Of a stretch of 64,000 bases of DNA, positions 823 to 63,688 are shown in pieces. The stretch spans positions 310,315 to 374,314 of the IMG/VR virus record IMGVR_UViG_3300047558_000137; one strand, given 5' to 3'. The translations under genes and the position numbers were made by a program. The notes under the pieces are model-generated. The model had not been told where the DNA came from. It did not search any database and worked only from the letters and a program-made list of their open reading frames with translations. The first letter of the stretch is position 1; each line of letters opens with the position of its first letter.

Positions 823-899
823 TGGCGACCCCGAATGGATTTGAACCACTGACATTTGGTTTTGGAGACCAACGTTCTGCCGGACTGAACTACGGAGCC
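823..899 (-). tRNA. tRNA-Trp(CCA)
   Basis: GGCTCCG/CGGGGTC acceptor, anticodon arm TTGGT-CT CCA AA-ACCAA, TTCAAAT T-loop, encoded CCA. Confidence 0.95.
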
Positions 900-907
900 A
901 TATTAAA

Positions 908-1121
908 TTTGTAAGTAGTGCTACCATCATTATAAGCACCATTCACCCTTTACGTAAAGCCTAGGCTGGGACTCGGTACGTTACTTGGGATTCATCCAGC
1001 CTGTGCGCCACTATGCACCCGAGTCTTCCGACCCGTTGGGAATCGAACCCACGACCTTTTACTGTTTAGGTAGTTCGAACATACCATTAACAGCGTGACT
1101 TCACTTGCTAACACTTACAAA
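908..1121 (-). ncRNA. Unidentified ~215-nt multibranch structured RNA in tRNA array
   Basis: Terminal 9-bp inverted repeat TTTGTAAGT/ACTTACAAA; internal hairpins TGGG-TTCGATT-CCCA, CGGGTC-GGAA-GACTCG, AGGCTGG/CCAGCCT; fills the gap between two tRNAs. Confidence 0.65.
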
Positions 1122-1124
1122 ACT

Positions 1125-1216
1125 TGGCGGAAGGCGGAGGAGTCGAACCCCATCCCCGTTAGGAGAACCTGGTTTTCAAGGCCAGTCGCAGGACCAACCC
1201 CGCTGCATCACCTTCC
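1125..1216 (-). tRNA. tRNA-Ser(UGA) with 8/4 acceptor/T-stem fold
   Basis: Acceptor GGAAGGTG/CGCCTTCC (8 bp), T-stem GGGG/CCTC (4 bp), anticodon loop CT TGA AA, long variable arm TCTCC/GGGGA, G73, CCA. Confidence 0.9.
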
Positions 1217-1225
1217 ATAATAGAT

Positions 1226-1374
1226 TTTCTGAGTGACCAGCTATCTTTCTCAAGGACTCACTGGCTTGTCTCGTAGAGGAGAGTTTAAACTACCCGATGT
1301 TGCTACTGGTGTGTCAGTCTCAAGAATAGGGACCTAGCGCACCGGGGACTCAATCCAAACGTCTAACTCAGAAA
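1226..1374 (-). ncRNA. Unidentified ~150-nt structured RNA in tRNA array
   Basis: Terminal inverted repeat TTTCTGAGT/ACTCAGAAA nearly spanning the gap between flanking tRNA-type genes; internal hairpins. Confidence 0.55.
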
Positions 1375-1376
1375 CT

Positions 1377-1449
1377 TGGTGGATCAATGCGGGTTCGAAC
1401 CGCTACTGAGACCCATAATGGCAATCCCAGTTACTCCTAGACTTGACCC
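1377..1449 (-). ncRNA. tRNA-like RNA lacking a D-stem, with Ala identity elements (tmRNA tRNA-like-domain mimic)
   Basis: GGGTCAA/TTGATCC acceptor with G3.U70, A73, CCA; GCGG-TTCGAAC-CCGC T-arm; unpaired D-loop GTCTAGGAGTA; long ACTGGGAT/GTCTCAGT stem in place of an anticodon arm. Confidence 0.7.
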
Positions 1450-1455
1450 ATAACT

Positions 1456-1530
1456 TGGTGGAAGTAGCTAGATTCGAACTAGCGATAGTTACCGTATGAA
1501 GGTAGTGCATTACCACTTTGCTATACTTCC
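1456..1530 (-). tRNA. tRNA with CAU anticodon (Met or Ile2)
   Basis: GGAAGTA/TACTTCC acceptor, anticodon loop TT CAT AC, GCTAG-TTCGAAT-CTAGC T-arm, CCA. Confidence 0.9.
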
Positions 1531-1531
1531 A

Positions 1532-1625
1532 GTATTCTAAAACACATTAGTTGCCTAGCTTTGTCCCGGCAGTCGTTACCCGTCAAAAGGATAAAGAGCG
1601 TTTCATCTAATATGCTTTAGAATAC
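1532..1625 (-). ncRNA. Unidentified ~94-nt RNA closed by a 19-bp stem
   Basis: GTATTCTAAAGCATATTAG pairs fully with CTAATGTGTTTTAGAATAC on the minus strand using two G.U pairs (A.C mismatches on plus). Confidence 0.6.
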
Positions 1626-1637
1626 CCTGCATTTCTG

Positions 1638-1768
1638 CAGGATATGATAGGGTTGATACCCTACCCAGTTATTTGTACTCTGCCGTTATCGCCAGCATTT
1701 CATCCAACTGTCCGCCCGTTTGTGGCATGTTTTAAGTGCGCCACCCAGTCCTCGTTACTGGTATCCTT
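1638..1768 (-). ncRNA. Unidentified ~130-nt multibranch RNA
   Basis: Closing AGGATA/TATCCT stem with hairpins CCAGT/ACTGG, GTGGC/GCCAC, TAGGGT/ACCCTA. Confidence 0.5.
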
Positions 1769-1777
1769 CACACTACT

Positions 1778-1942
1778 CTACGGTTGTAAAGTACGTTCTT
1801 CCTGAACTTTTCTGGAACGATAGTGCCTTTCGGCCCGTTCCATCTTATCTTGGATCAACTTGTGTAGCTGTTCCTTAGTAAGAGTATGTTCAGTTGTGAA
1901 CTTTACTTCTCGCATACGTTGTTTCAAATTCACTTGTTTCAT
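1778..1942 (-). CDS. Small basic hypothetical protein (54 aa), first gene after the attenuator-like terminator
   Basis: ATG at 1942 (MKQVNLKQRMRE...) preceded by AGGA; the ORF-track start at 1960 lies in the terminator U-tract. Confidence 0.5.
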   Translation of the reverse strand: MKQVNLKQRMREVKFTTEHTLTKEQLHKLIQDKMERAERHYRSRKVQEERTLQP

Positions 1943-1958
1943 TTTCTTTCCTACAAAC

Positions 1959-1991
1959 AAAAAACCCTAGGGTTTTTAGTCCTAGGGTTCC
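1959..1991 (-). terminator. Intrinsic terminator, putative attenuator
   Basis: AACCCTAGG-ACTAAAAAC-CCTAGGGTT followed by TTTTG on minus strand; its 5' arm GGAACCCT is also complementary to AGGGTTCC in the upstream leader ORF. Confidence 0.8.
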
Positions 1992-2019
1992 TTTTAGTTT
2001 AGAATGTAAGTTTGTTTAC

Positions 2020-2163
2020 TTAACCATCCCATCCCTCTCGGAACCCTGTTGTAATCTCTGGTGTGCGATCACTATTTGTATTCGCAAACAAAGACCAATA
2101 GGCTGACATGCCTAGTCCGGGCTGTTGTTGTTTAAGCGAATGACAGAATGTGTGTTGCATCAT
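2020..2163 (-). CDS. Putative attenuator leader peptide (47 aa)
   Basis: MMQHTFCHSLKQQQPGLGMSAYWSLFANTNSDRTPEITTGFREGWDG*; ATG 7 nt after a consensus -10 box; ends about 30 nt before the terminator. Confidence 0.65.
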   Translation of the reverse strand: MMQHTFCHSLKQQQPGLGMSAYWSLFANTNSDRTPEITTGFREGWDG

Positions 2164-2170
2164 GTTTCCT

Positions 2171-2199
2171 ATTGTATTTTATTTATCTCTTTGTGTCAA
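2171..2199 (-). promoter_or_regulatory. sigma70-type promoter with late-type ATAAATA in the spacer
   Basis: TTGACA-17 nt (caaagagataaataaaa)-TACAAT. Confidence 0.8.
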
Positions 2200-2233
2200 C
2201 CACTATATCAAATAGTGGTAAAATTGTTCATTT

Positions 2234-2324
2234 TGGTAGGAGAGACCGGAGTCGAACCGATATCAGCCAATTATCTGTTGCTACGGGGTATAAGCCCGCC
2301 GTTTTACCATTAAACTACTCTCCC
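2234..2324 (-). tRNA. tRNA-Ile(UAU) with long variable region
   Basis: GGGAGAG/CTCTCCT acceptor, GCGGG-CT TAT AC-CCCGT anticodon arm, ~21-nt variable region, TTCGACT T-loop, CCA. Confidence 0.85.
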
Positions 2325-2332
2325 AGAAAATT

Positions 2333-2418
2333 TGGTGCGACTGGCCGGAATCGAACCGGCACGCCATTACAGCGGGAGATTTTAAGTCTCCTGTGGCTAC
2401 CAATTACACCACAGTCGC
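2333..2418 (-). tRNA. tRNA-Leu(UAA)
   Basis: GCGACTG/CAGTCGC acceptor, GGAGA-CT TAA AA-TCTCC, long variable arm, CCA. Confidence 0.95.
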
Positions 2419-2426
2419 ATCTACGA

Positions 2427-2477
2427 TCATAACAATCGTATTCGTAACTGGAATGTGTCTAAGGTAAGTTGTTTCAT
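2427..2477 (-). CDS. Putative 16-aa leader peptide rich in UUA/UUG/AUA codons
   Basis: ATG AAA CAA CTT ACC TTA GAC ACA TTC CAG TTA CGA ATA CGA TTG TTA TGA (MKQLTLDTFQLRIRLL*); ATG follows the -10 box by 6 nt; stop is 8 nt before tRNA-Leu(UAA). Confidence 0.55.
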   Translation of the reverse strand: MKQLTLDTFQLRIRLL

Positions 2478-2483
2478 GATCTA

Positions 2484-2512
2484 ATTGTAATTTATTTATC
2501 TTTTACTGTCAA
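2484..2512 (-). promoter_or_regulatory. sigma70-type promoter with late-type ATAAATA in the spacer
   Basis: TTGACA-17 nt (gtaaaagataaataaat)-TACAAT. Confidence 0.8.
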
Positions 2513-3369
2513 ATGACTTTTGCATCTGTACAGCTCTTGCATAAACTGCCGCTATTGTAGCAAGGTTCTGCATTCAGTGCAAGCAATTTGGTAAATTCAG
2601 GACCTGTAAACAAATCTTCATACTTTTGTGTTAAAAGATTGCCCAGCACATGCTTGGTATCGTAGTCCATACAGCATAATACTACATCTCCATTAGGCAA
2701 CAAAACGTTTTGGTCATATAGACTTGTTTTACCGCAAACTACGGGCTTTTTGTGTTCTATAGTAAACACAACAGGTTGCTCTTTGATCTGCTCTTTGTTT
2801 AATGTACCTGCACGATCATGGGCCGCAATACTCCAATCATGACTGACGTATACCCCGGGTAAATGGCGAATTGCTGGATGCACTCCATGATCACTCATGG
2901 CCATTGCTTCGTAATGTATACCTGCTGCCTGTACAATTTCACGCATACCAATGTAGGCGTATTCCCATTCTTCACTGAGCTTCCAACCCTTCATGTTACC
3001 TGCTTCGTCAGGAAAGTGTATCTTGAATATGTCAACTTGGCCTGCATGATTTAGTAACAGTTCGCCTACTCTATGTACTGTAGTTTCGTCCCAGTTGTAT
3101 AGTGTAGTAAAGATGGCAACTTGCCTATCATTTTCTAGGGCATACTCTAGCATGTCTGTACAGGCCGGATTAACCCAGGGTTCTGCCATGCCAGAAAAGT
3201 CAATACGACAATCCCATGGTAGTCGATCTACTACTGTTTTAAATGTATCCAAGCTCATATACTTGGCATCTTCTTTACCATATGCATCACGTAGGTTGTC
3301 TTGTGGACAAAACGTACACATTAGGGGACAACCAATCATGGTTGTTATTTCCATTGTTTTGTGGCTCAT
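2509..3369 (-). CDS. Radical SAM protein with SPASM/twitch domain
   Basis: CPLMCTFC (CxxxCxxC) and C-terminal C...GDVVLCC...CKSC. Confidence 0.9.
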   Translation of the reverse strand: MSHKTMEITTMIGCPLMCTFCPQDNLRDAYGKEDAKYMSLDTFKTVVDRLPWDCRIDFSGMAEPWVNPACTDMLEYALENDRQVAIFTTLYNWDETTVHRVGELLLNHAGQVDIFKIHFPDEAGNMKGWKLSEEWEYAYIGMREIVQAAGIHYEAMAMSDHGVHPAIRHLPGVYVSHDWSIAAHDRAGTLNKEQIKEQPVVFTIEHKKPVVCGKTSLYDQNVLLPNGDVVLCCMDYDTKHVLGNLLTQKYEDLFTGPEFTKLLALNAEPCYNSGSLCKSCTDAKVI

Positions 3370-3608
3370 GACTTATTTAACTGTGCCCAAGCGAGCCAGG
3401 ATCTAAAACTTTCATAGACCGCTTGCGCTTCTTTATCATCTTGATCGATTCGTACTCCACGCACATAGAAACCATTATGGCTCACACGTAGCATTTCTTC
3501 TGAACCTGAATGAAAAATAATGCTATTTTTTGCCGCTTCAATTGCATCTACATCGATACTAAACAACTTTTTTGGGGGTTGTTCGTAGTTAAACTGAGAG
3601 GTGGTCAT
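3366..3608 (-). CDS. Hypothetical protein
   Basis: ORF tightly packed with neighbours. Confidence 0.7.
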   Translation of the reverse strand: MTTSQFNYEQPPKKLFSIDVDAIEAAKNSIIFHSGSEEMLRVSHNGFYVRGVRIDQDDKEAQAVYESFRSWLAWAQLNKS

Positions 3609-3945
3609 GCTTAATTTCCCTTACTGGATCGCCCAATGCTTCGGCTAGGTTGTTCTTAATTGTAACACGTATGTTATTATAATTACGAATTTCAACTGCT
3701 CTGCGCCCAATCTCCTCGTAGCCTAGGTTGTCTTCTAGTCCGCGACGTAGATCGCTTTCCAATGCCCAAATGCTTAGATGCACAACTTCTAGTCGCTCAA
3801 GCAATGGCTGTACAGGTTCTAGATCAAATCTTTTGGCCTGTTCAGCATAGTAATCGTATTCAGCTTGGTTACCTAGACCTTTATCTAGTTTAATCTTGGC
3901 AATTACTAATCGATCTAATAGTTCTACTACTGGGAAAAATATCAT
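3589..3945 (-). CDS. Hypothetical helical protein (ELLDRL...IW.LE..LR family)
   Basis: ORF with 4-nt overlap to upstream gene. Confidence 0.75.
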   Translation of the reverse strand: MIFFPVVELLDRLVIAKIKLDKGLGNQAEYDYYAEQAKRFDLEPVQPLLERLEVVHLSIWALESDLRRGLEDNLGYEEIGRRAVEIRNYNNIRVTIKNNLAEALGDPVREIKHDHLSV

Positions 3946-5051
3946 ACGTACTTCTTAAATTGTTCTAATGTTAAGTCAGGAAGATTAATGTAATCTGTGT
4001 CTGCATATTGTGGCAGTGCATCAATTAAGATTTTATACAAATCAAAATAGACTTCTTCTGCTAAACGATACATAATCATTCTGTTATGCTGACGAATTTC
4101 TTGTGTTGGCTCAACAAGTTTTACATCAGATTTAACTAAGCGTTCAACTTCTGCGGCCACTGCACGTAGGCGCTCTCCTGGATACTCTAGACTATCGTAA
4201 GACTCATCTATTAGATCGCCAAACGTTTTAAACCCAAAGGCATGTAAGTGTCTAAGTGTATATTGCCCGCCTACTACAAGAAATGGATGCCCAACTAATA
4301 ACGGCTTGTATGTTTTCTCTGTTACAAAGGTTTCGTTAGGTGCTGTTTCCAATGCTAGACTAAATTCTGTGTGCCAGTAATGCGGCGGATAGAAGTTTTC
4401 AAATCTAAAATCTTCATGGAAGTTTGCATTGGGCCAATCAATGATTGGCTTAACATCTAGTTCAGTACGATCGGGAATTCTGTAATCAATGAAGCTGTGG
4501 ATGCTTTGATTTAAGATATCTCGTTCAATCAGTTCCTTAAACATTTCTTCTCTATTGTGTCGGCGTGTGCCATTTAAGAAAAGATATTTAAAAGTCTTTG
4601 GAAATGTGCTGATACCATCTGCGGTATATGCAAGTCTAGCACGATTAAACTCTGTAGTTAGTCTATAGACAAAATACTTGTCTAGATTGTGTTCAACGAA
4701 ACCATCAACTGCCCTATTGCCTTGCTTAACCAAGTGAATAGGTATGCGTCTACGCACATAGTCCCTAGTGGGGTAATAACTACTGCTTAGTGTACTTTCA
4801 CACTCACTTGGATAGTAGAAAATAATTGGAATGCCCAGGCTAGCACAACGATCAATAATTTGCTTGGCATAGTCGCCATCGTTGCCCGGGACTTCTTCAA
4901 CAAAGGCATCTGTTATTACAGCATCGCCTGTAATATCTTCTGGATTTTTTACAATGGTGTAGGGTATGTTATACAGTTCCAGTACTGTAGTTAATAATCG
5001 ATTTCTTGCACTACTAGGCCCAAGGGTCTGTCGAATTAAAAAATTTATCAT
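3942..5051 (-). CDS. Glycosyltransferase-like protein (TEKTYKPL..GHPF family)
   Basis: Start corrected to MINFLIRQ (5051), because the longer ORF overlaps tRNA-Leu; ETAPNETFVTEKTYKPLLVGHPF resembles the GT10-like motif. Confidence 0.65.
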   Translation of the reverse strand: MINFLIRQTLGPSSARNRLLTTVLELYNIPYTIVKNPEDITGDAVITDAFVEEVPGNDGDYAKQIIDRCASLGIPIIFYYPSECESTLSSSYYPTRDYVRRRIPIHLVKQGNRAVDGFVEHNLDKYFVYRLTTEFNRARLAYTADGISTFPKTFKYLFLNGTRRHNREEMFKELIERDILNQSIHSFIDYRIPDRTELDVKPIIDWPNANFHEDFRFENFYPPHYWHTEFSLALETAPNETFVTEKTYKPLLVGHPFLVVGGQYTLRHLHAFGFKTFGDLIDESYDSLEYPGERLRAVAAEVERLVKSDVKLVEPTQEIRQHNRMIMYRLAEEVYFDLYKILIDALPQYADTDYINLPDLTLEQFKKYV

Positions 5052-5057
5052 GTTATA

Positions 5058-5134
5058 TGGTGCGGATGGTGGGACTCGAACCCACAAAATTTGGCTTCTA
5101 AGACCAACACGTATACCAATTCCATCACATCCGC
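5058..5134 (-). tRNA. tRNA-Leu(UAG), short variable loop
   Basis: GCGGATG/CATCCGC acceptor, TTGGT-CT TAG AA-GCCAA, 5-nt variable loop, CCA. Confidence 0.92.
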
Positions 5135-5145
5135 GTATGTGATCT

Positions 5146-5174
5146 AGTATAGTGTATATATCTTTATTTGTCAA
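5146..5174 (-). promoter_or_regulatory. sigma70-type promoter for tRNA-Leu(UAG)
   Basis: TTGACA-17-TATACT. Confidence 0.8.
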
Positions 5175-6768
5175 GCGGGTATAGCATTTTATAAAAATCT
5201 TTTGATGCAATACCTGTTAAACTTTGTTCTCTATACTTTTCACCCAGTTGATTAAAATACTCGATTGCCAGTGATTCAGTGTCCGAATCTAATTCTGTTA
5301 ATAATCCCTCTGTCGGTATATCATAGTATGTAGCCTGCGATACCCAAACACTCCTAGACCATAGATACTTTTTATTTCTAGCATCAACAACATTTCTTCT
5401 ACTTGTATTATTAATTAAATCATACAACATTTGAATCGAGTTTTGCTGCCTACCAACTTCTCTCATGTTTTCCCAATAAGGAGTATCCTTTTTGCAAAGA
5501 TGAAAGGCAAAACGAATACGTAGTAGTGTATCTGCCATACGCATATTAACATACTCGTTGAAGTCTTCTTTCCATGTGCAGTCTAAATTTGTATCTGTTT
5601 TTAGATTGTCTACAACAAATTCAATTTTGCCTAGTGCAGTTGAAAAAGCATTAGCATCATACGCATCTACTAATCCATGACTTAGCCCTATTGTTATACA
5701 ATTATTAACAAATGCTTTTTCTTGGTATCCAGGCTCCCATGAAATTAATCTAAAGTCTACATCTGTTTTACCAGTTTTTTGGTAATACTCATCCTTTAGT
5801 GATTCAACATTGGTTGTATGGCGAGAATTGAATACATATCCCTCGCCACTACGAACATCCATTGCTACACTAAAATGCCAACCTTGATCCATTGCACGAA
5901 TGTATGCATTGCTAGTTCGTTCGTTATCGTCGGTATATTTGTGTGGCCCAACAATGCATCTATCATTGAATGAATCATCTAGATGCTTAAACTTGTAGGG
6001 TAATTTTTTGCACAAAACTCTAGCGAAGCCAGTGCAGTCAAAATATAGATCTGCTGTTGCATGTGAGTCATCGTCTAATAGTAGATAATCAATATCGCCA
6101 TTTTCTTTTAACACAACATCCTTAATTGCAATAGGTAACTCTTTAACACCGGCTGGCTTGCCTACCATATTATGAACCACTGCCCCAATTCGCATAGCAT
6201 TAATATGATATCCAAATGTGCCACGTGGATGATTCCATTGCCCGGTTGTTATATTATAAGGTATTCTATCGTTACGCGAATACCAATAAGATTGGCTTGA
6301 ATGTCCTGTATATAAATCCTTAGGAGTTCTATACTCTAATTGATTTAGTAGGCCTTTATTTTTTAAGTACAACCATACATCGAGCATATCATATGGTGTT
6401 TGCGATTTATAAAAAGATGAATACTTTACTGCATCTATTCCACTCTCTTTAAAATCATTAAGTATTCCCATGTTAGGAACATCAGCATGATTTGTGTAGA
6501 AAACTGAATTGCTGTTATCCCAGTCCTGAAACCGAGACCCTACTCGAAATATCGATCCCGATTCTTTAATCCATTTAATATCTTTTTCAAACCCTAGCAC
6601 CTTGTTCATAAAAGATGATGAGTTCCATTGTAGTGCTTCTCCTACTCCCACCACTGGAGTTTTTGGATCGTATATAAGTGTTACGTCTAGATCTGGTCTA
6701 TTACGCTTAATAGCAGATGATACAAAATTGCCGGCTGCGCCAGCGCCAACAACAATTATTTTTTTCAT
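5164..6768 (-). CDS. Tryptophan-halogenase-family flavoprotein (divergent)
   Basis: Start corrected to MKKIIVVGAGAAG (6768); VGVGEA and ADLYFDCTGF motifs. Confidence 0.85.
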   Translation of the reverse strand: MKKIIVVGAGAAGNFVSSAIKRNRPDLDVTLIYDPKTPVVGVGEALQWNSSSFMNKVLGFEKDIKWIKESGSIFRVGSRFQDWDNSNSVFYTNHADVPNMGILNDFKESGIDAVKYSSFYKSQTPYDMLDVWLYLKNKGLLNQLEYRTPKDLYTGHSSQSYWYSRNDRIPYNITTGQWNHPRGTFGYHINAMRIGAVVHNMVGKPAGVKELPIAIKDVVLKENGDIDYLLLDDDSHATADLYFDCTGFARVLCKKLPYKFKHLDDSFNDRCIVGPHKYTDDNERTSNAYIRAMDQGWHFSVAMDVRSGEGYVFNSRHTTNVESLKDEYYQKTGKTDVDFRLISWEPGYQEKAFVNNCITIGLSHGLVDAYDANAFSTALGKIEFVVDNLKTDTNLDCTWKEDFNEYVNMRMADTLLRIRFAFHLCKKDTPYWENMREVGRQQNSIQMLYDLINNTSRRNVVDARNKKYLWSRSVWVSQATYYDIPTEGLLTELDSDTESLAIEYFNQLGEKYREQSLTGIASKDFYKMLYPLDK

Positions 6769-6776
6769 AGATAAAA

Positions 6777-6853
6777 TGGTGCGCCCGGAGGGACTTGAAC
6801 CCGCGACCAATGGATTATGAGTCCACTGCTCTAACCAACTGAGCTACAGGCGC
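6777..6853 (-). tRNA. tRNA(CAU), probably Ile2 (lysidine type)
   Basis: GCGCCTG/CGGGCGC acceptor, GTGGA-CT CAT AA-TCCAT, CCA; body resembles bacterial tRNA-Ile2. Confidence 0.9.
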
Positions 6854-57457: not shown

Positions 57458-59167
57458 TTATAAAACTGGGCCAGCGCCAGCTGGTGCTACTGCACCTGGC
57501 ATTCCGCCCATTCCTGGAGCACCTTGTCCCATATCTGCGCCCGGAGGTCCTGCAGGAGTTTCTGGACCCAATGCTTCCATATCGCTTTGGATACCACCTG
57601 GGCTAATTCCTACACTACGCAAGCCCGGGCTTTCAACTGGTGCTGTCTCAACATTACCACGTTCTTCGTTCCATGCTGTTTCGTTTTCACTAATCTCCTG
57701 CTCAGTCATACCTAAATAACGCTTCATTAAGAAACGCTTACTTAGATAAGGGATAGGTTCTAGCTGTGTAAATGTAGCAATACGTGCAGAGTCAATGTCT
57801 GCTTGACGGTATTGTGCAAAGTTTTGTGGCTCATTAAACGTTAGATCAAACAGACTTCCATCAATATTAAAGCCTCTCCAGCGCATAAACAGCTTGAATT
57901 CGTTGTCTAATTTGTCTGCAACCATGGACTGTAGACGTTGGCAATACTGGTTAAAGCGCCATTCTTGGATAAGTGCTGTACCTACACGGCCGTCTGTATA
58001 TGCTTGACTACCGTCATCTGCTGTAGTAGGCAAATAGCTACTAGGAATACGCAAACCACGGAATAACTTGTTAGTAAAGAAGCGCAAATCAGTAATTTCG
58101 CCTAGGTTTGCGCCGCCAGGCAATACATCTACGCTAGACCCACGACCGTCTGCTGTAGTAGGGAAGAAGTAATCTTCGTTTGTGCTTAATGGATTATATG
58201 TAGCATCCATCATGTTTTGTGCGCCCGCACCAGTTTGTGTAGGAATACGGCGCTGATGAATTTCGTTTTTAATACGTTCAACAAATGCCATAGCCATGTG
58301 ACTTGGCATGTTACCTACGTCAATCTTAAAGATTCTACGCTCCGGAGCACGTTGTACACGATAGATAATAATACTATCTTCTAGCAGTTCTTTCTGCTTA
58401 AAGACCTTAAAAATGTTCTCTAATACACTGTTACCGAAAGGCCAAAATACGTCCAGACCCTCTGTTAAACTCAGGTGTAAAATGTGTTCTGCGGCAATTG
58501 CAGCTTCGTTTTTAGCATGAGTAAAGCGACTTCCGCCACCGTACGGTGCTTGTGGCTGCACGTATGCACCCGACGGACCACCCGTTTGTGGGTGGTTAGT
58601 ATAGGTATCTGTAGTAGCCACAGCGGTCATTGTTAGGTTTTGGAAGTTAGGATTTAGGTCCTTAATTAAGTATTGCTCGGGCTTTTTGCCTTCACCTTCG
58701 TTAACAATAACCTTGGTAACCTTACTCATTTCGGTCCACATTAACTTAAAGTTTTCTGGATCACGAATAAAAACTTGGTCCCCGTACTTGATAGTATTAC
58801 GGAAGATTTTGAAGATACGCTTGTTAAAATCATTAAGTGCTACCCATTGTTGTAGCTGTTCTTTAATGATTTTTACTTCGTTATCACTTGGTTGTTCTTT
58901 ATACTTGATAGTAAATGCTGTGTGATTTTCTTGGTTCTTTTGTGTACAGAACTCAGCTAAAATATCTAGAGCCGCGTTAACTTCACTATCCATATCCATT
59001 TGTTCGTATTGGTTGTAACGCTCAACACGGTTAGGGTGCCCAATATATACTTCAGGCAACTGGCTTTGATAGTTACGGAATCCAGGATCTGGTGCGCGGC
59101 CATTGCCCAGTGTACTCACGTTACTAGGTAAATTACTGGTCTTAAAATACTTTTTCCATCCGGCCAT
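57458..59167 (-). CDS. Portal protein (gp20-like)
   Basis: LLEDSIIIYRVQRAPERRIFKIDVGNMP, EDYFFP, LPGG.NLG. Confidence 0.97.
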   Translation of the reverse strand: MAGWKKYFKTSNLPSNVSTLGNGRAPDPGFRNYQSQLPEVYIGHPNRVERYNQYEQMDMDSEVNAALDILAEFCTQKNQENHTAFTIKYKEQPSDNEVKIIKEQLQQWVALNDFNKRIFKIFRNTIKYGDQVFIRDPENFKLMWTEMSKVTKVIVNEGEGKKPEQYLIKDLNPNFQNLTMTAVATTDTYTNHPQTGGPSGAYVQPQAPYGGGSRFTHAKNEAAIAAEHILHLSLTEGLDVFWPFGNSVLENIFKVFKQKELLEDSIIIYRVQRAPERRIFKIDVGNMPSHMAMAFVERIKNEIHQRRIPTQTGAGAQNMMDATYNPLSTNEDYFFPTTADGRGSSVDVLPGGANLGEITDLRFFTNKLFRGLRIPSSYLPTTADDGSQAYTDGRVGTALIQEWRFNQYCQRLQSMVADKLDNEFKLFMRWRGFNIDGSLFDLTFNEPQNFAQYRQADIDSARIATFTQLEPIPYLSKRFLMKRYLGMTEQEISENETAWNEERGNVETAPVESPGLRSVGISPGGIQSDMEALGPETPAGPPGADMGQGAPGMGGMPGAVAPAGAGPVL

Positions 59168-59198: not shown

Positions 59199-61697
59199 TT
59201 ATGCGCTTACACGATATATCTTCTCTAGTTCGCTAGCTTGGTCTTTGTTTACTTTTACTAGTTCTTCCATCTTTTCAATCATGGTTGCAAACAGCCTTGC
59301 AGTTTCATTTACACCTGTGACTTGTGCTGGTCCACTGATTAGTTCTGCACCTGCTTCACCAACAATCCCTAATTCCCCGGCACCTAATCTTCCGCCTTTT
59401 TTCATTAGCTCAACGTGTACATGCTCACCATTTCCGCTAGCGTTAGGATGTGCTTCTGCTTTAGCTAACCCATTTAATATTTGATTAATAGCTGCTAATG
59501 TTGCATCCCGGGTACGTGGATCATTAAATTCAGCAATGTTAAGATCCGCAGCTTTACCTTGTGTGTGCTTACTATTTTTATTATTATCTTGATGCCATTT
59601 ATCATTTAATGCATTAATTGCATTAATGTGTAGGCCCGGCATACTACGTATCCTTTTAACAACTTCTACTAGTCGTTGTTCTGCGGCACCGCCGGCTGTA
59701 GCTTCACCAGGCTTACTTCCACGTAGTAAATCTGTTAGTCCTTCGTAATTGGTAGTCATACTTCCCAATGGACTAAGTTCTGCTACTTCTAACGGCTTAG
59801 TGCTGCCGGCCATTTTTTGCGCGGCTTCCTTTTTACGTGCTTCTCTATATGCTCTAGCTTCGTTAGCCAATGCTTCATCTTGTTCTCGACGTGCTTTTGC
59901 TTTTCTTGCCGCAGCTTCTCTTTGTGCCGCTGGATCGGGCCCAGCAACCGTAGCGGCATCTTGTGCTGCTCTTACTTCTTGATTTGCCAATCGTGTTCGT
60001 TCAGCTGCACGTATTTCTTCGGCTGTTTGTGGCTTCTTGCCAGTTAATTTTTCTACTAGCTCTAGAATAACTCCAGAAAATTTATCAACAGCATCACCGA
60101 ATGTTGGGCCAAATTTAGTAACTAATGTTTCATTGAAGTCTACCATCCTGGTAGCAATATTAGCCATCTTAGGTAAACTCTCGACTGTAATTTCGTCCAT
60201 ACGCTTTTTAAACTTTTGTATAGACTCTAATAGAGCATCGTATTCAGTTGTTGCTTTATCTGTACCAGACTTACGCTTTTTATCTTGTTCAGCTAGTTCC
60301 TTTAAGGTACTTCCTTCAAGGTTAACACGCTTGTCTGTTGCTGATACAATTTGAGATGTATTTTTGTTTAATCTAGAAACATACTCGTTTTGCGTAGCAA
60401 ATGCTAATCTTGATACGTTAGCACCTTGATCTGTAAATTGCTTTAATGCACTTTCGTTGCCTTTTAATACTTCTGCAGTTGATTGATAAAACTGTTCTTT
60501 AGTATTACGTGTGGCAGCAACCATTTCTTGTGCCATTTTTACAAATAAGCCATTACTCTGTGCATTTGCTTCTAAGCCAGCTTGACTAATTACAGTACCG
60601 TTAACTGCAATTTCTTCAACAATATCAGCAAAATCATCGCCCATCATTGATTTAGCAATTAGAATTTGATTCTTAAGATTTTCTGCATAGTTAGTGCCAT
60701 TTCTAGCATCCTCTGCTGATAGACGATTAATAGTGGCCTGTGTTGCAGCATGTTTTAACCGTTCTTCTATTTCTTTCTTCTGTTGTGCCGCGGTCATGCC
60801 AGTTATGGCTGTCATTTCCTTAAGAGTTACTAGATAAGCGCCGGATCCTTTTTCTAAGAACTGGTAATTCTTAACCGTATCTATACCAGCTTTTGCGGCC
60901 AGCTCTGCATATTGTGCCGCAGCTCCGTTAACAGCTTCAAACGAGCCATACATAACCAGCAGGCCTTTTTCATTATTTCTTGCTTCTCGGCCCATGGCCA
61001 TAACTCTGTTGGTAGCTTGTTGTATAGTGCCGCCTAGTGTAGATAGCCCTTCAACGTTTTCTGTAACAAATTTACTATATTGAGCTATAGACATGCCACC
61101 GGCGTGTGCAGCTTTACCCATTTCTGTTAAGTTGCCGCCAAAGGTGACACCAACTTTGCTTAGATTATTGTAATTGTCGACAAGAGCCTGGCTGTTCTCC
61201 ATCATCATCTTGCCAACTTGTAGACTCATGTCTATAGCAACAGATGTGATTTTATCTACGCCAGCAATAGCTGCACCAAGGAAAGGAATACCCGAGAACA
61301 TTGAGCTTAATGCGCCAGTTATAGACTTAATTGCATTTCCAAGCAAATTCATTGTAGGAATTACAGAAGTAAATGCCTTGTCGGAAGTATATATAGCCTG
61401 TGACGAATCTATAGCACCGCTAGCAAATTGATGTAATCCGCCTAATACTTTCTTAATACCCTCGGCAATGGCCTTTTCACGATCTTCTTCGTATTTTTGC
61501 TGTTTCTTTTGAGTTTCGATTAAATCAAGTTTGGCTTTAATTTCCTGCTCGGAAACTTTGTGTAACTGGGCCAGCTTCTTAATAAAGGCTTCTTCTTGTA
61601 GCTGAGCCTTTGCCATCATGCGGGCTTGGCTTTCATAGCCAGAGTTAACCGTTCCTAAAATCGAATCAAGTTTGTCTAATCTATCTTCTACAGCCAT
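59199..61697 (-). CDS. Tape-measure/baseplate-hub-like protein with C-terminal M15-type peptidase
   Basis: Long helical body; SKHTQGKAAD...GEHVHVE Zn-peptidase motif; GIVGEAGAELI tail motif. Confidence 0.75.
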   Translation of the reverse strand: MAVEDRLDKLDSILGTVNSGYESQARMMAKAQLQEEAFIKKLAQLHKVSEQEIKAKLDLIETQKKQQKYEEDREKAIAEGIKKVLGGLHQFASGAIDSSQAIYTSDKAFTSVIPTMNLLGNAIKSITGALSSMFSGIPFLGAAIAGVDKITSVAIDMSLQVGKMMMENSQALVDNYNNLSKVGVTFGGNLTEMGKAAHAGGMSIAQYSKFVTENVEGLSTLGGTIQQATNRVMAMGREARNNEKGLLVMYGSFEAVNGAAAQYAELAAKAGIDTVKNYQFLEKGSGAYLVTLKEMTAITGMTAAQQKKEIEERLKHAATQATINRLSAEDARNGTNYAENLKNQILIAKSMMGDDFADIVEEIAVNGTVISQAGLEANAQSNGLFVKMAQEMVAATRNTKEQFYQSTAEVLKGNESALKQFTDQGANVSRLAFATQNEYVSRLNKNTSQIVSATDKRVNLEGSTLKELAEQDKKRKSGTDKATTEYDALLESIQKFKKRMDEITVESLPKMANIATRMVDFNETLVTKFGPTFGDAVDKFSGVILELVEKLTGKKPQTAEEIRAAERTRLANQEVRAAQDAATVAGPDPAAQREAAARKAKARREQDEALANEARAYREARKKEAAQKMAGSTKPLEVAELSPLGSMTTNYEGLTDLLRGSKPGEATAGGAAEQRLVEVVKRIRSMPGLHINAINALNDKWHQDNNKNSKHTQGKAADLNIAEFNDPRTRDATLAAINQILNGLAKAEAHPNASGNGEHVHVELMKKGGRLGAGELGIVGEAGAELISGPAQVTGVNETARLFATMIEKMEELVKVNKDQASELEKIYRVSA

Positions 61698-61758: not shown

Positions 61759-62604
61759 ATGAGTAGTTTATCCCCTAATCCATTGGCCAAACATTTTAGA
61801 CAGCCTGCACTTTATATCAAACTTCCTAGCCACGGGCGCTGGTATCCTGAGGGCGAAATTGACATTAGTGCAACTAACGAAATCCCTGTTTACCCAATGA
61901 CTGCCCGGGATGAGATCATGATGAAAACTCCCGATGCATTAATGAATGGTGCTAGCACAACACAGGTTATTAAAAGTTGCTGCCCAAGCATTAAAAACCC
62001 CGAAAATATGCCTATTGTAGATTTAGATGCAGTATTGCTAGGCATACGTCTGGCTACATATGGCCCAGAAATGGAATTTACAACGGCATGCCCTCACTGC
62101 AATACAAAAGCAGAAAAAGCCCTCAATGTATCTATTCTACTAGATAAAATTGTTTCCGGCGACTGGACGTATCCTATAAAGTATAACGGATTGGAAATTA
62201 CATTAAAGCCGCAAACATATAAAGACTTCAACGACAATAACCTAATGAACTTTGATGAGCAACGTCTATTGCAAGTAATGCAAAACGATACAATGGATGA
62301 AGATGAAAAAGTTAAAAAATTCGACGAGATGTTTGCTAAACTAGTTGCAACCGGGATTAGTCAAGTTAGCAAAAACATTGCAAGTATTAAAACTGCTGAA
62401 GGGGTTATAGTTGACAACCCGGACTTTATCAGAGAATTCTTAGATAATTGTGAAAAAGGCGTTTGGAATGCTATCAAAGAACGTTTAGATGCTATTAGAC
62501 GTGAAAACAATTACAACGAAATAGCATTAACCTGTGAAAATGAACAATGCGGCAAAGACTTTATTGCGCCGTTTGTATTCGAGCAATCAAATTTTTTCGT
62601 ATAA
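61759..62604 (+). CDS. Baseplate hub assembly / tail chaperone protein (T4 gp26-like)
   Basis: LPS.G..Y, PMTARDE, DLDAVLLGIRLATYG, CPHC, C-terminal C...C...NFF. Confidence 0.85.
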   Translation: MSSLSPNPLAKHFRQPALYIKLPSHGRWYPEGEIDISATNEIPVYPMTARDEIMMKTPDALMNGASTTQVIKSCCPSIKNPENMPIVDLDAVLLGIRLATYGPEMEFTTACPHCNTKAEKALNVSILLDKIVSGDWTYPIKYNGLEITLKPQTYKDFNDNNLMNFDEQRLLQVMQNDTMDEDEKVKKFDEMFAKLVATGISQVSKNIASIKTAEGVIVDNPDFIREFLDNCEKGVWNAIKERLDAIRRENNYNEIALTCENEQCGKDFIAPFVFEQSNFFV

Positions 62605-62828
62605 GGCTTTTGACATTAAGCAATCAAGAGATCGTTGAATTAATTGATTCAATGAGTAAAGATGCAAAAGCCATTAAAGAAGAGCTCTTAACATTATGCT
62701 GGTATATGAGGGGCAGTGTTAGTTATGACGATTCTATGATGTTATCTCCCGAAGAAAGAGATATTATTAACAGCATTATTAAAAAGAACTTAGAAGCCAC
62801 TAAGGAAACAGGATTACCATTCTTTTAA
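62589..62828 (+). CDS. gp51-like baseplate assembly segment, probably expressed by -1 frameshift from the upstream gene
   Basis: In -1 frame, open through slippery A AAT TTT TTC; CWYMRGSVSY...LSPEER motif; no good SD for internal ATG at 62652. Confidence 0.65.
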   Translation, partial: KFFRIRLLTLSNQEIVELIDSMSKDAKAIKEELLTLCWYMRGSVSYDDSMMLSPEERDIINSIIKKNLEATKETGLPFF

Positions 62829-62879
62829 GATCACTACGTGATCTGTTGTTTCACTTCGTTCACAACATTTATTTTATTA

Positions 62880-63253
62880 TTACAAGAGCGAAGCGATGTA
62901 GTATTCATCTAGATTAAGTGGTCACACTTTGCCCGCACAGGGCAAAAAATGACTTCATCTGAGTTGCACAGTCACTTAGCGTTACATCAATTACAGAGGC
63001 GGTTGTCCGGTACCTCGAGATGCGTCTTATCACAACGGCGGGCTAATATCTATACGCTAACATACATATTAACCGTGCTCAATCACTTGAGCGTCTTTTT
63101 AGCTTTTATTACTCTATTCAAATAACCAAACCGTAGCATTTACGATCGACGTCCTGTTAAGGATGGTGGTTAAGCACTCTAGTCAGCATAGAGATTTCCG
63201 TCCCCCTTTTTATCGGGTTGTCACTAGGCACCTGAACTTAGCCGGTGCGAGCC
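62880..63253 (-). ncRNA. Long structured non-coding element downstream of GIY-YIG gene
   Basis: Dense hairpins: GCACC/GGTGC, CTCTA/TAGAG, TCCT-TAAC-AGGA, GCTCAA-GTGA-TTGAGC, GGTTAATAT/ATATTAGCC, TTTGCCC/GGGCAAA; no ORF in the track. Confidence 0.6.
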
Positions 63254-63688
63254 TTAAACTGATAACTTGTTTATAATGTGGGAGCCATGGACACGGACTG
63301 ATATTTGTCCGTTATAGTAATCTGTTGATTCCAAAACTTTGTGTGTAAATTGTTCTCGAGCCTCAACGTAGCTACATTCTGCTTTACTTTTACATAGGTA
63401 TAGTATTTCCCGTGTAAATTTGTCAGCACCTAATGCTTCTACATCTTTGTTTAATTGATCATTTGAGCCATAATATTCGCGCCAATCAGAGTCCACTTTG
63501 CTGCGGATTTTCTTTTTCTTTTTGGTGCCGTTTTTTAATTTTACTGTTTTGGTAGATGTTTTACTAAATTTTGCTAGTTTTTTGCCTATGTATTTGCGCC
63601 CTGATACAAGGTTTGTGATTAGATAGACAAAGCCCACACAGTCTTCTGGTAATTCATTGATTGTGTTGCCTTGATAAATCCATGTCAT
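63254..63688 (-). CDS. GIY-YIG family nuclease (single domain)
   Basis: GFVYLITN..SGRKYIGKK, YYGS, REIL, YVEAREQ, YYN. Confidence 0.85.
   Translation of the reverse strand: MTWIYQGNTINELPEDCVGFVYLITNLVSGRKYIGKKLAKFSKTSTKTVKLKNGTKKKKKIRSKVDSDWREYYGSNDQLNKDVEALGADKFTREILYLCKSKAECSYVEAREQFTHKVLESTDYYNGQISVRVHGSHIINKLSV

Follow-up and report, generated by a model that had tools for sequence, protein, structure and literature searches.

Does the T4 gp26-like tail-hub gene of a giant freshwater phage encode one protein or two? The gene ends in AAT TTT TTC GTA TAA, which contains a possible slippery site for the ribosome, and the -1 frame stays open for 76 more codons. Lambda-type phages use a -1 frameshift of this kind to make a short and a C-terminally extended form of their tail assembly chaperones, whereas no equivalent is generally recognised in T4-type phages. 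An earlier note, made from the sequence alone, proposed that a -1 programmed frameshift at one of two overlapping heptamers fuses the gp26-like gene to a gp51-like ORF, next to a divergent tape measure gene. Here, we evaluated this proposal by comparison with related loci, and we find that it is strongly supported by comparative evidence, although frameshifting itself is inferred and has not been shown by experiment.

The locus

We analysed a stretch of 64,000 nt (the window) at the end of a 374,314-bp virus record from a freshwater metagenome (IMGVR_UViG_3300047558_000137), which is rated complete. The sequence and reading frames are as the earlier note described them, and the features of the locus are as follows.

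57458..59167 (-): T4-type portal gene (PF07230, E 4.6e-106).
59199..61697 (-): divergent neighbour of 832 aa, a probable tape measure or hub protein with a weak M15/VanY-like C-terminal region.
61759..62604 (+): gp26/gp51-family (PF12322) gene, 0-frame product of 281 aa ending in EQSNFFV, with a predicted TAC-like N-terminal domain (about residues 1-105) and two CxxC pairs; stop at 62602-62604.
62592..62598 (+): slippery heptamer T TTT TTC, X XXY YYZ in the 0 frame (codons Phe279 and Phe280).
62599..62604 (+): 6-nt spacer GTATAA, which holds the last 0-frame sense codon and the 0-frame stop.
62598..62828 (+): -1 frame extension of 76 codons, predicted to be helical, plus the stop TAA at 62826-62828.
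62605..62672 (+): predicted stimulatory RNA structure.
62828..62844 (+): terminator-like hairpin directly after the -1 ORF stop, from a consensus scan only.

The gene matches Pfam PF12322, 'T4 bacteriophage base plate protein' (E 1.1e-13; 51.8 bits against a cut-off of 24.5), and phrog_150, 'baseplate hub' (E 6.7e-17, profile positions 6-226 of 282), and it is the only PF12322 gene in the genome. After a -1 slip on T TTT TTC, reading resumes at CGT (62598) and the predicted products are 281 aa and 280+76 = 356 aa. The only candidate starts in the -1 frame are TTG 62610, with AAGG just 3 nt upstream, and ATG 62652, which has no SD. In a single sequence the motif is not beyond chance, given that TTTTTTC occurs 15 times in the window against 17.7 +/- 3.6 in shuffled sequences. 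Pfam, PHROG and NCBIfam scans of the 76-aa extension found nothing significant.

Comparison with related loci

To test whether the site is maintained, we collected 14 viral-contig loci, 80 metagenome loci and two GenBank phages that encode relatives of the protein, at 29-64% identity to that of the window. The in-frame heptamer T TTT TTC is present near the 3' end in 97/97 related loci, 90/90 after de-duplication, although background codon use predicts a frequency of only about 0.064 for an x-Phe-Phe site. The three wobble bases of the heptamer are T, T and C in all 90 loci, whereas neighbouring conserved codons vary synonymously (Asp GAT 33/GAC 27; Phe at -5 TTT 56/TTC 9; three codons for Pro and six for Ser). 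Elsewhere in these genes Phe is encoded by TTT in 74% of cases, and other Phe-Phe pairs are TTT-TTC in only 4 of 26 cases. In the 90 loci the codon before the heptamer is AAT, AGT, CAT, GAT, GGT or GCT. The second heptamer proposed in the earlier note, A AAT TTT (62589-62595), is lost wherever the preceding codon is AGT, CAT, GAT, GGT, GCT or CGT, and we rejected it as the slip site because it is not conserved.

Selection switches frame at the heptamer. Downstream of it, the 0 frame continues with G, A, V, E or D and reaches a stop 1, 3, 4 or 6 codons after the heptamer, and the 0-frame residues there are not conserved. The -1 frame instead reads a conserved F-F-R-x-R-L-L peptide, in which the first Arg is present in 90/90 loci and is encoded by all four CGN codons (CGC 27, CGA 15, CGT 17, CGG 31), and the second in 82. 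The variable base of that first Arg codon is silent in the -1 frame and non-silent in the 0 frame, and it lies upstream of every candidate start. The extension is 76-77 codons in nearly all loci and ends in a hydrophobic P-F-F type motif.

Between the upstream -1 frame stop and the invariant W-x-M-R-G motif, no ATG, GTG or TTG position is shared between loci. The commonest is TTG at +18, which is simply the second Leu codon of R-L-L and occurs in 47/88 loci. Seven loci have no canonical start at all before the motif, and 20 have no ATG.

The same T TTT TTC is found in the cultured phages PA5oct, Serratia BF, GAP32, XaC1, RaK2, KP13-7, Atu_ph07 and Phosso. In the first six of these the -1 peptides begin FFRSRLL, FFRTKLL, FFRGQLL, FFQRILV and FFRSQLL. 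A tblastn search with the BF trans-frame peptide finds 74 cultured jumbo-phage records (Escherichia, Klebsiella, Salmonella, Erwinia, Yersinia, Vibrio and others), and the alignment generally starts at residue 1 and usually overlaps the annotated hub gene. None of the ten GenBank records inspected annotates a joined CDS. Small ORFs are called here in Phosso, BF, GAP32 and XaC1, some from an internal ATG, while nothing is annotated there in RaK2, KP13-7 and PA5oct.

Natural fusions and two-gene loci

An exhaustive phmmer search with the 76-aa extension gave 226 hits, of which about 18 clusters are proteins of 319-351 aa that carry the extension in frame at their C-terminus. All nine that we scanned have a PF12322 domain in front of it, and their junction, L-D-x-S-x-x-F-R-x-K-L-I, aligns without gaps to the predicted trans-frame junction N-F-F-R-x-R-L-L. 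In this sister lineage, all 4 contigs with enough flank hold two tandem PF12322 genes, in which the fused gene is immediately preceded by a second, short gene of 276-297 aa ending in (D/N)-F-(F/L)-x-x-x. In one of the four (L117) the locus is the same as in the window, with a portal gene, a TMP-like gene and the divergent pair. None of the long genes contains TTTTTTC, and only 1 of 5 distinct short genes keeps it, where the -1 frame closes at once.

Gene copy number fits this picture. The window genome, Atu_ph07, PA5oct, BF and GAP32 each have one PF12322 gene, whereas T4 has two paralogues, gp26 and gp51. Both gp26 (E 8.8e-64) and gp51 (E 3.9e-52) are PF12322 and phrog_150 members, with gp26 covering phrog profile positions 14-235 and gp51 covering 13-280. 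One natural fusion (P0152) covers positions 56-270, with the match running into its extension. T4 gp26 shares the x-F-F C-terminal motif and ends in EFFELL, but with codons TTC TTT it has no slippery site.

The label 'gp51-like ORF' in the earlier note is right in spirit but wrong by position. In T4, gene 26 is followed by gene 25, and gene 51 is divergent from gene 26 and heads the 51-27-28-29 operon. However, T4 gp51 is itself a paralogue of gp26 with an extra C-terminal tail of about 50 aa, against 76 aa for the extension here. Comparing families by hhalign, the fusions align with gp51 homologues from the N-domain to the last residues (E 1.3e-4, probability 53%), so the long form has a gp51-like architecture, while the extension alone matches the gp51 tail only weakly (E 0.002, probability 13%). 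Alignments of gp26 or of the extension against single T4 sequences, and PHROG scans, gave nothing.

Predicted RNA structure

In the subclade of the window (33 sequences), RNAalifold finds a 9-bp helix between GGCUUUUGA, starting 7 nt after the heptamer, and UCAAAAGCC about 55 nt further on, with three compensated pairs. At the aligned codon positions, 49/89 distinct loci (55%) form at least 7 of 9 pairs, with types such as GGCUCUUGA/UCAAGAGCC, and the observed mean is 6.37 pairs against 5.77 +/- 0.08 when partners are shuffled between sequences. Other subclades pair the same 5' arm with 3' arms 30-80 nt away. Over all loci, the 8 nt at +7 to +14 have a pairing probability of 0.90, against 0.65 when the downstream sequence is shuffled, and a stem whose 5' arm starts 7 nt after the heptamer is predicted in 91% of loci against 46% of shuffled controls. 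The sequences are related, however, so the shuffling statistics overstate independence, and RNAalifold on an ungapped alignment of all loci and on the mixed second subclade gave no consensus structure. In the window, an 8-bp long-range stem (62605-62612 with 62665-62672) is extended by 62614-62617 with 62661-62664 and encloses a 10-bp hairpin at 62632-62655, burying both candidate starts. The predicted energy is -21.9 kcal/mol for the 95 nt after the heptamer. These predictions fit a stimulatory element but do not prove one. No SD-like stimulator was seen upstream.

Predicted protein structure and neighbouring genes

AlphaFold2 models the natural fusion P0152 with pLDDT 95.9 and pTM 0.92, and the extension forms four helices (helices at 262-337). 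A Foldseek search of this model against the PDB found nothing at E <= 0.001, and a sequence search of solved structures with the gp26 profile found nothing, while the matching viral predicted structures (BFVD) are gp26/gp51-type hub proteins. The N-terminal 105 residues of the window protein were modelled alone (pLDDT 89), and only 14 of 48,161 representative PDB chains reach Z >= 2 against this model. The top three are YqbN (3KLU, Z 6.1), the HK97 tail assembly chaperone (2OB9, Z 6.0) and Rbstp2171 (3FGX, Z 5.0), with the next at 3.7, and all three are described as tail assembly chaperones (PMC9603447). The likeness is modest (rmsd 4.4-6.1 A), and Foldseek against the PDB lists 2OB9 and 3KLU only at E > 1. 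Foldseek against AFDB clusters also returns several 'Phage tail assembly protein' entries (reaching E 3.2e-3, probability 1.00) and 'Phage tail protein E'.

The divergent 832-aa neighbour resembles tape measure proteins by language-model features (top hits at 0.92) and has a weak Peptidase_M15_3 match (E 0.063). Its RaK2 orthologue is annotated as similar to a tail tape measure protein, and its PA5oct orthologue was found in virions by MS. The order portal, TMP-like gene, divergent gp26 recurs in BF, GAP32, XaC1 and the L117 contig, although in Atu_ph07 the annotated tape measure gene lies elsewhere.

Alternative explanations

The downstream ORF could be a separate small gene of about 59-73 aa, translated from TTG 62610 or ATG 62652 or by termination-reinitiation at the gp26 stop, with the heptamer reflecting only a conserved Phe-Phe C-terminus. 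AAGG-N3-TTG is indeed present in the window and in 47/88 relatives, and nine relatives have an ATG overlapping the 0-frame stop (ATGA), so some independent initiation or re-initiation cannot be excluded in those genomes. As a general explanation it is unlikely, given that it cannot account for the invariant wobble bases of the heptamer, the -1 frame purifying selection on codons upstream of every candidate start or the loci that have no start. T4 gp26 and 4 of the 5 distinct short paralogues of two-gene lineages have lost the heptamer at this site (TTC TTT or TTT TTA), and in-frame fusions join exactly at this point. In the window, both candidate starts sit inside predicted stems and the SD spacing of 3 nt is too short.

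Transcriptional slippage, in which RNA polymerase adds one extra U in the T6 run, would give the identical 356-aa protein without any ribosomal shift, but we consider it very unlikely. Six T is probably short next to bacterial and phage slippage tracts, which tend to be 9 or more, and the run is never lengthened in the 90 loci although TTT TTT would also encode Phe-Phe. The conserved register, the terminal C and a stem placed 7 nt downstream are features of ribosomal rather than polymerase slippage. A homopolymer sequencing error or a real frameshift mutation splitting one 356-aa gene is more remote still. In-frame fused versions do exist in another lineage, but the same T6C and the same frame relationship are seen in 90 distinct independent assemblies and in finished genomes of cultured phages, and the fused genes have a different junction without a T run and, on the contigs with enough flank, come with a second, short paralogue.

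Discussion

We conclude that the single gp26/gp51-family gene of this jumbo phage very probably makes two proteins by -1 programmed ribosomal frameshifting. On this model, most ribosomes read AAT TTT TTC GTA and stop, giving the 281-aa form, while a fraction pause over U UUU UUC, held by the predicted stem downstream. The two tRNA-Phe re-pair one base back and the ribosome continues with CGU AUA AGG, adding a 76-residue helical domain to give the 356-aa form. By analogy with lambda G/GT and P2 E/E+E', the shared N-terminal part would be a chaperone for the neighbouring tape-measure or hub protein, and the extension would give a minority of molecules a second contact needed to nucleate the hub or tail. 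The ribosomal shift itself, the ratio of the two products and this chaperone role are inferred.

As in lambda gpG/gpGT, a -1 frameshift near the 3' end of an assembly gene is predicted to yield a short major product and an extended minor product, and the gene lies next to a tape-measure-like gene. However, it is divergent from that gene rather than directly upstream, the protein is much larger and belongs to PF12322, and the extension ORF does not overlap the tape measure gene. Phage P2 is also a contractile-tail phage with a T-rich slippery run and a -1 extension, but no sequence family is shared, and P2 E is about 90 aa and sits in the tube/sheath/TMP operon. T4 also makes two products from gene 26, but by an internal start (gp26'), and uses two separate, divergent genes for gp26 and gp51. 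In E. coli dnaX a heptamer is likewise followed by a short spacer and a stable stem, with an early stop in one frame, but the shifted product is the shorter one and an upstream SD-like stimulator is used.

The conserved frameshift of tail assembly chaperones is a hallmark of long-tailed phages, and we found no report of one in the gp26/gp51 family, including in the PA5oct and Atu_ph07 genome papers, in a literature search that missed most subscription journals. The T4 review lists gp26 and gp51 as hub assembly chaperones, with roles still described as uncertain or unknown (PMC3004832). The site ties this family to the G/GT logic through one gene with two predicted products, replacement by two genes in other lineages, and a predicted TAC-like N-domain next to a tape-measure-like gene. 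Several carriers infect E. coli (121Q, PBECO4), and in practice the finding also corrects the annotation of a core structural module in a whole group of jumbo phages. It is about as likely as not that the PF12322 family is the long-missing tail assembly chaperone pair of T4-like and RaK2-like myoviruses, with the short form corresponding to gpG and the long form to gpGT. The two forms would then be produced by a -1 frameshift in RaK2-like jumbo phages and their freshwater relatives, by tandem gene duplication in a sister lineage, and by the divergent paralogues gp26 and gp51 in T4. This would give gp51, an essential T4 protein of unknown function, a concrete role.

Features of the window and of related lineages

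Both predicted products end in a hydrophobic F-F motif, ...SNFF(V) for the short form and ...GLPFF for the long form, and this holds across most relatives. The stop of the -1 ORF is followed by a terminator-like hairpin. In the two-gene lineage, one short paralogue, located on contig L105, still has AAT TTT TTC, but its -1 frame closes after three codons, and it may be a relic of the frameshift state. In T4, gp26 and gp51 are paralogues of one Pfam/PHROG family, and gp51 homologues carry a further precomputed Pfam entry, PF28602. The positions of these features, and of those described below, are as follows.

Window 62826-62844 (+), end of the -1 ORF, with a terminator-like hairpin after its stop
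L105:411-1295 (+), short paralogue of the two-gene lineage
L101 (T4) 3803-5229, gp26 and gp51
Window 63254-63688 (-), GIY-YIG SegE-type homing endonuclease gene
L117:1-709 (-), T4-type portal gene in a contig of the two-gene sister lineage
Window 823-6853 (-), six tRNA genes
Window 63120-63253 (-), match to Polynucleobacter-1 RNA

The window also carries a GIY-YIG SegE-type homing endonuclease gene (PF19835, E 5.9e-35), and a SegE-type gene also lies near the same locus in the sister-lineage contig L117. In this contig, the T4-type portal gene product (963 aa) carries intein-splicing and HNH hits, so the portal gene appears to be interrupted by an intein. The six tRNA genes of the window are Trp, Met (two copies), Ile-TAT, Leu-TAA and Leu-TAG. 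Directly 3' of the segE-like homing endonuclease gene, we found a full-length match to the orphan Rfam family RF01718, Polynucleobacter-1 RNA (79.8 bits against a gathering score of 37, E 1.3e-16). The match lies inside a jumbo phage genome. It may hint at the host, or at a phage origin for this RNA motif.
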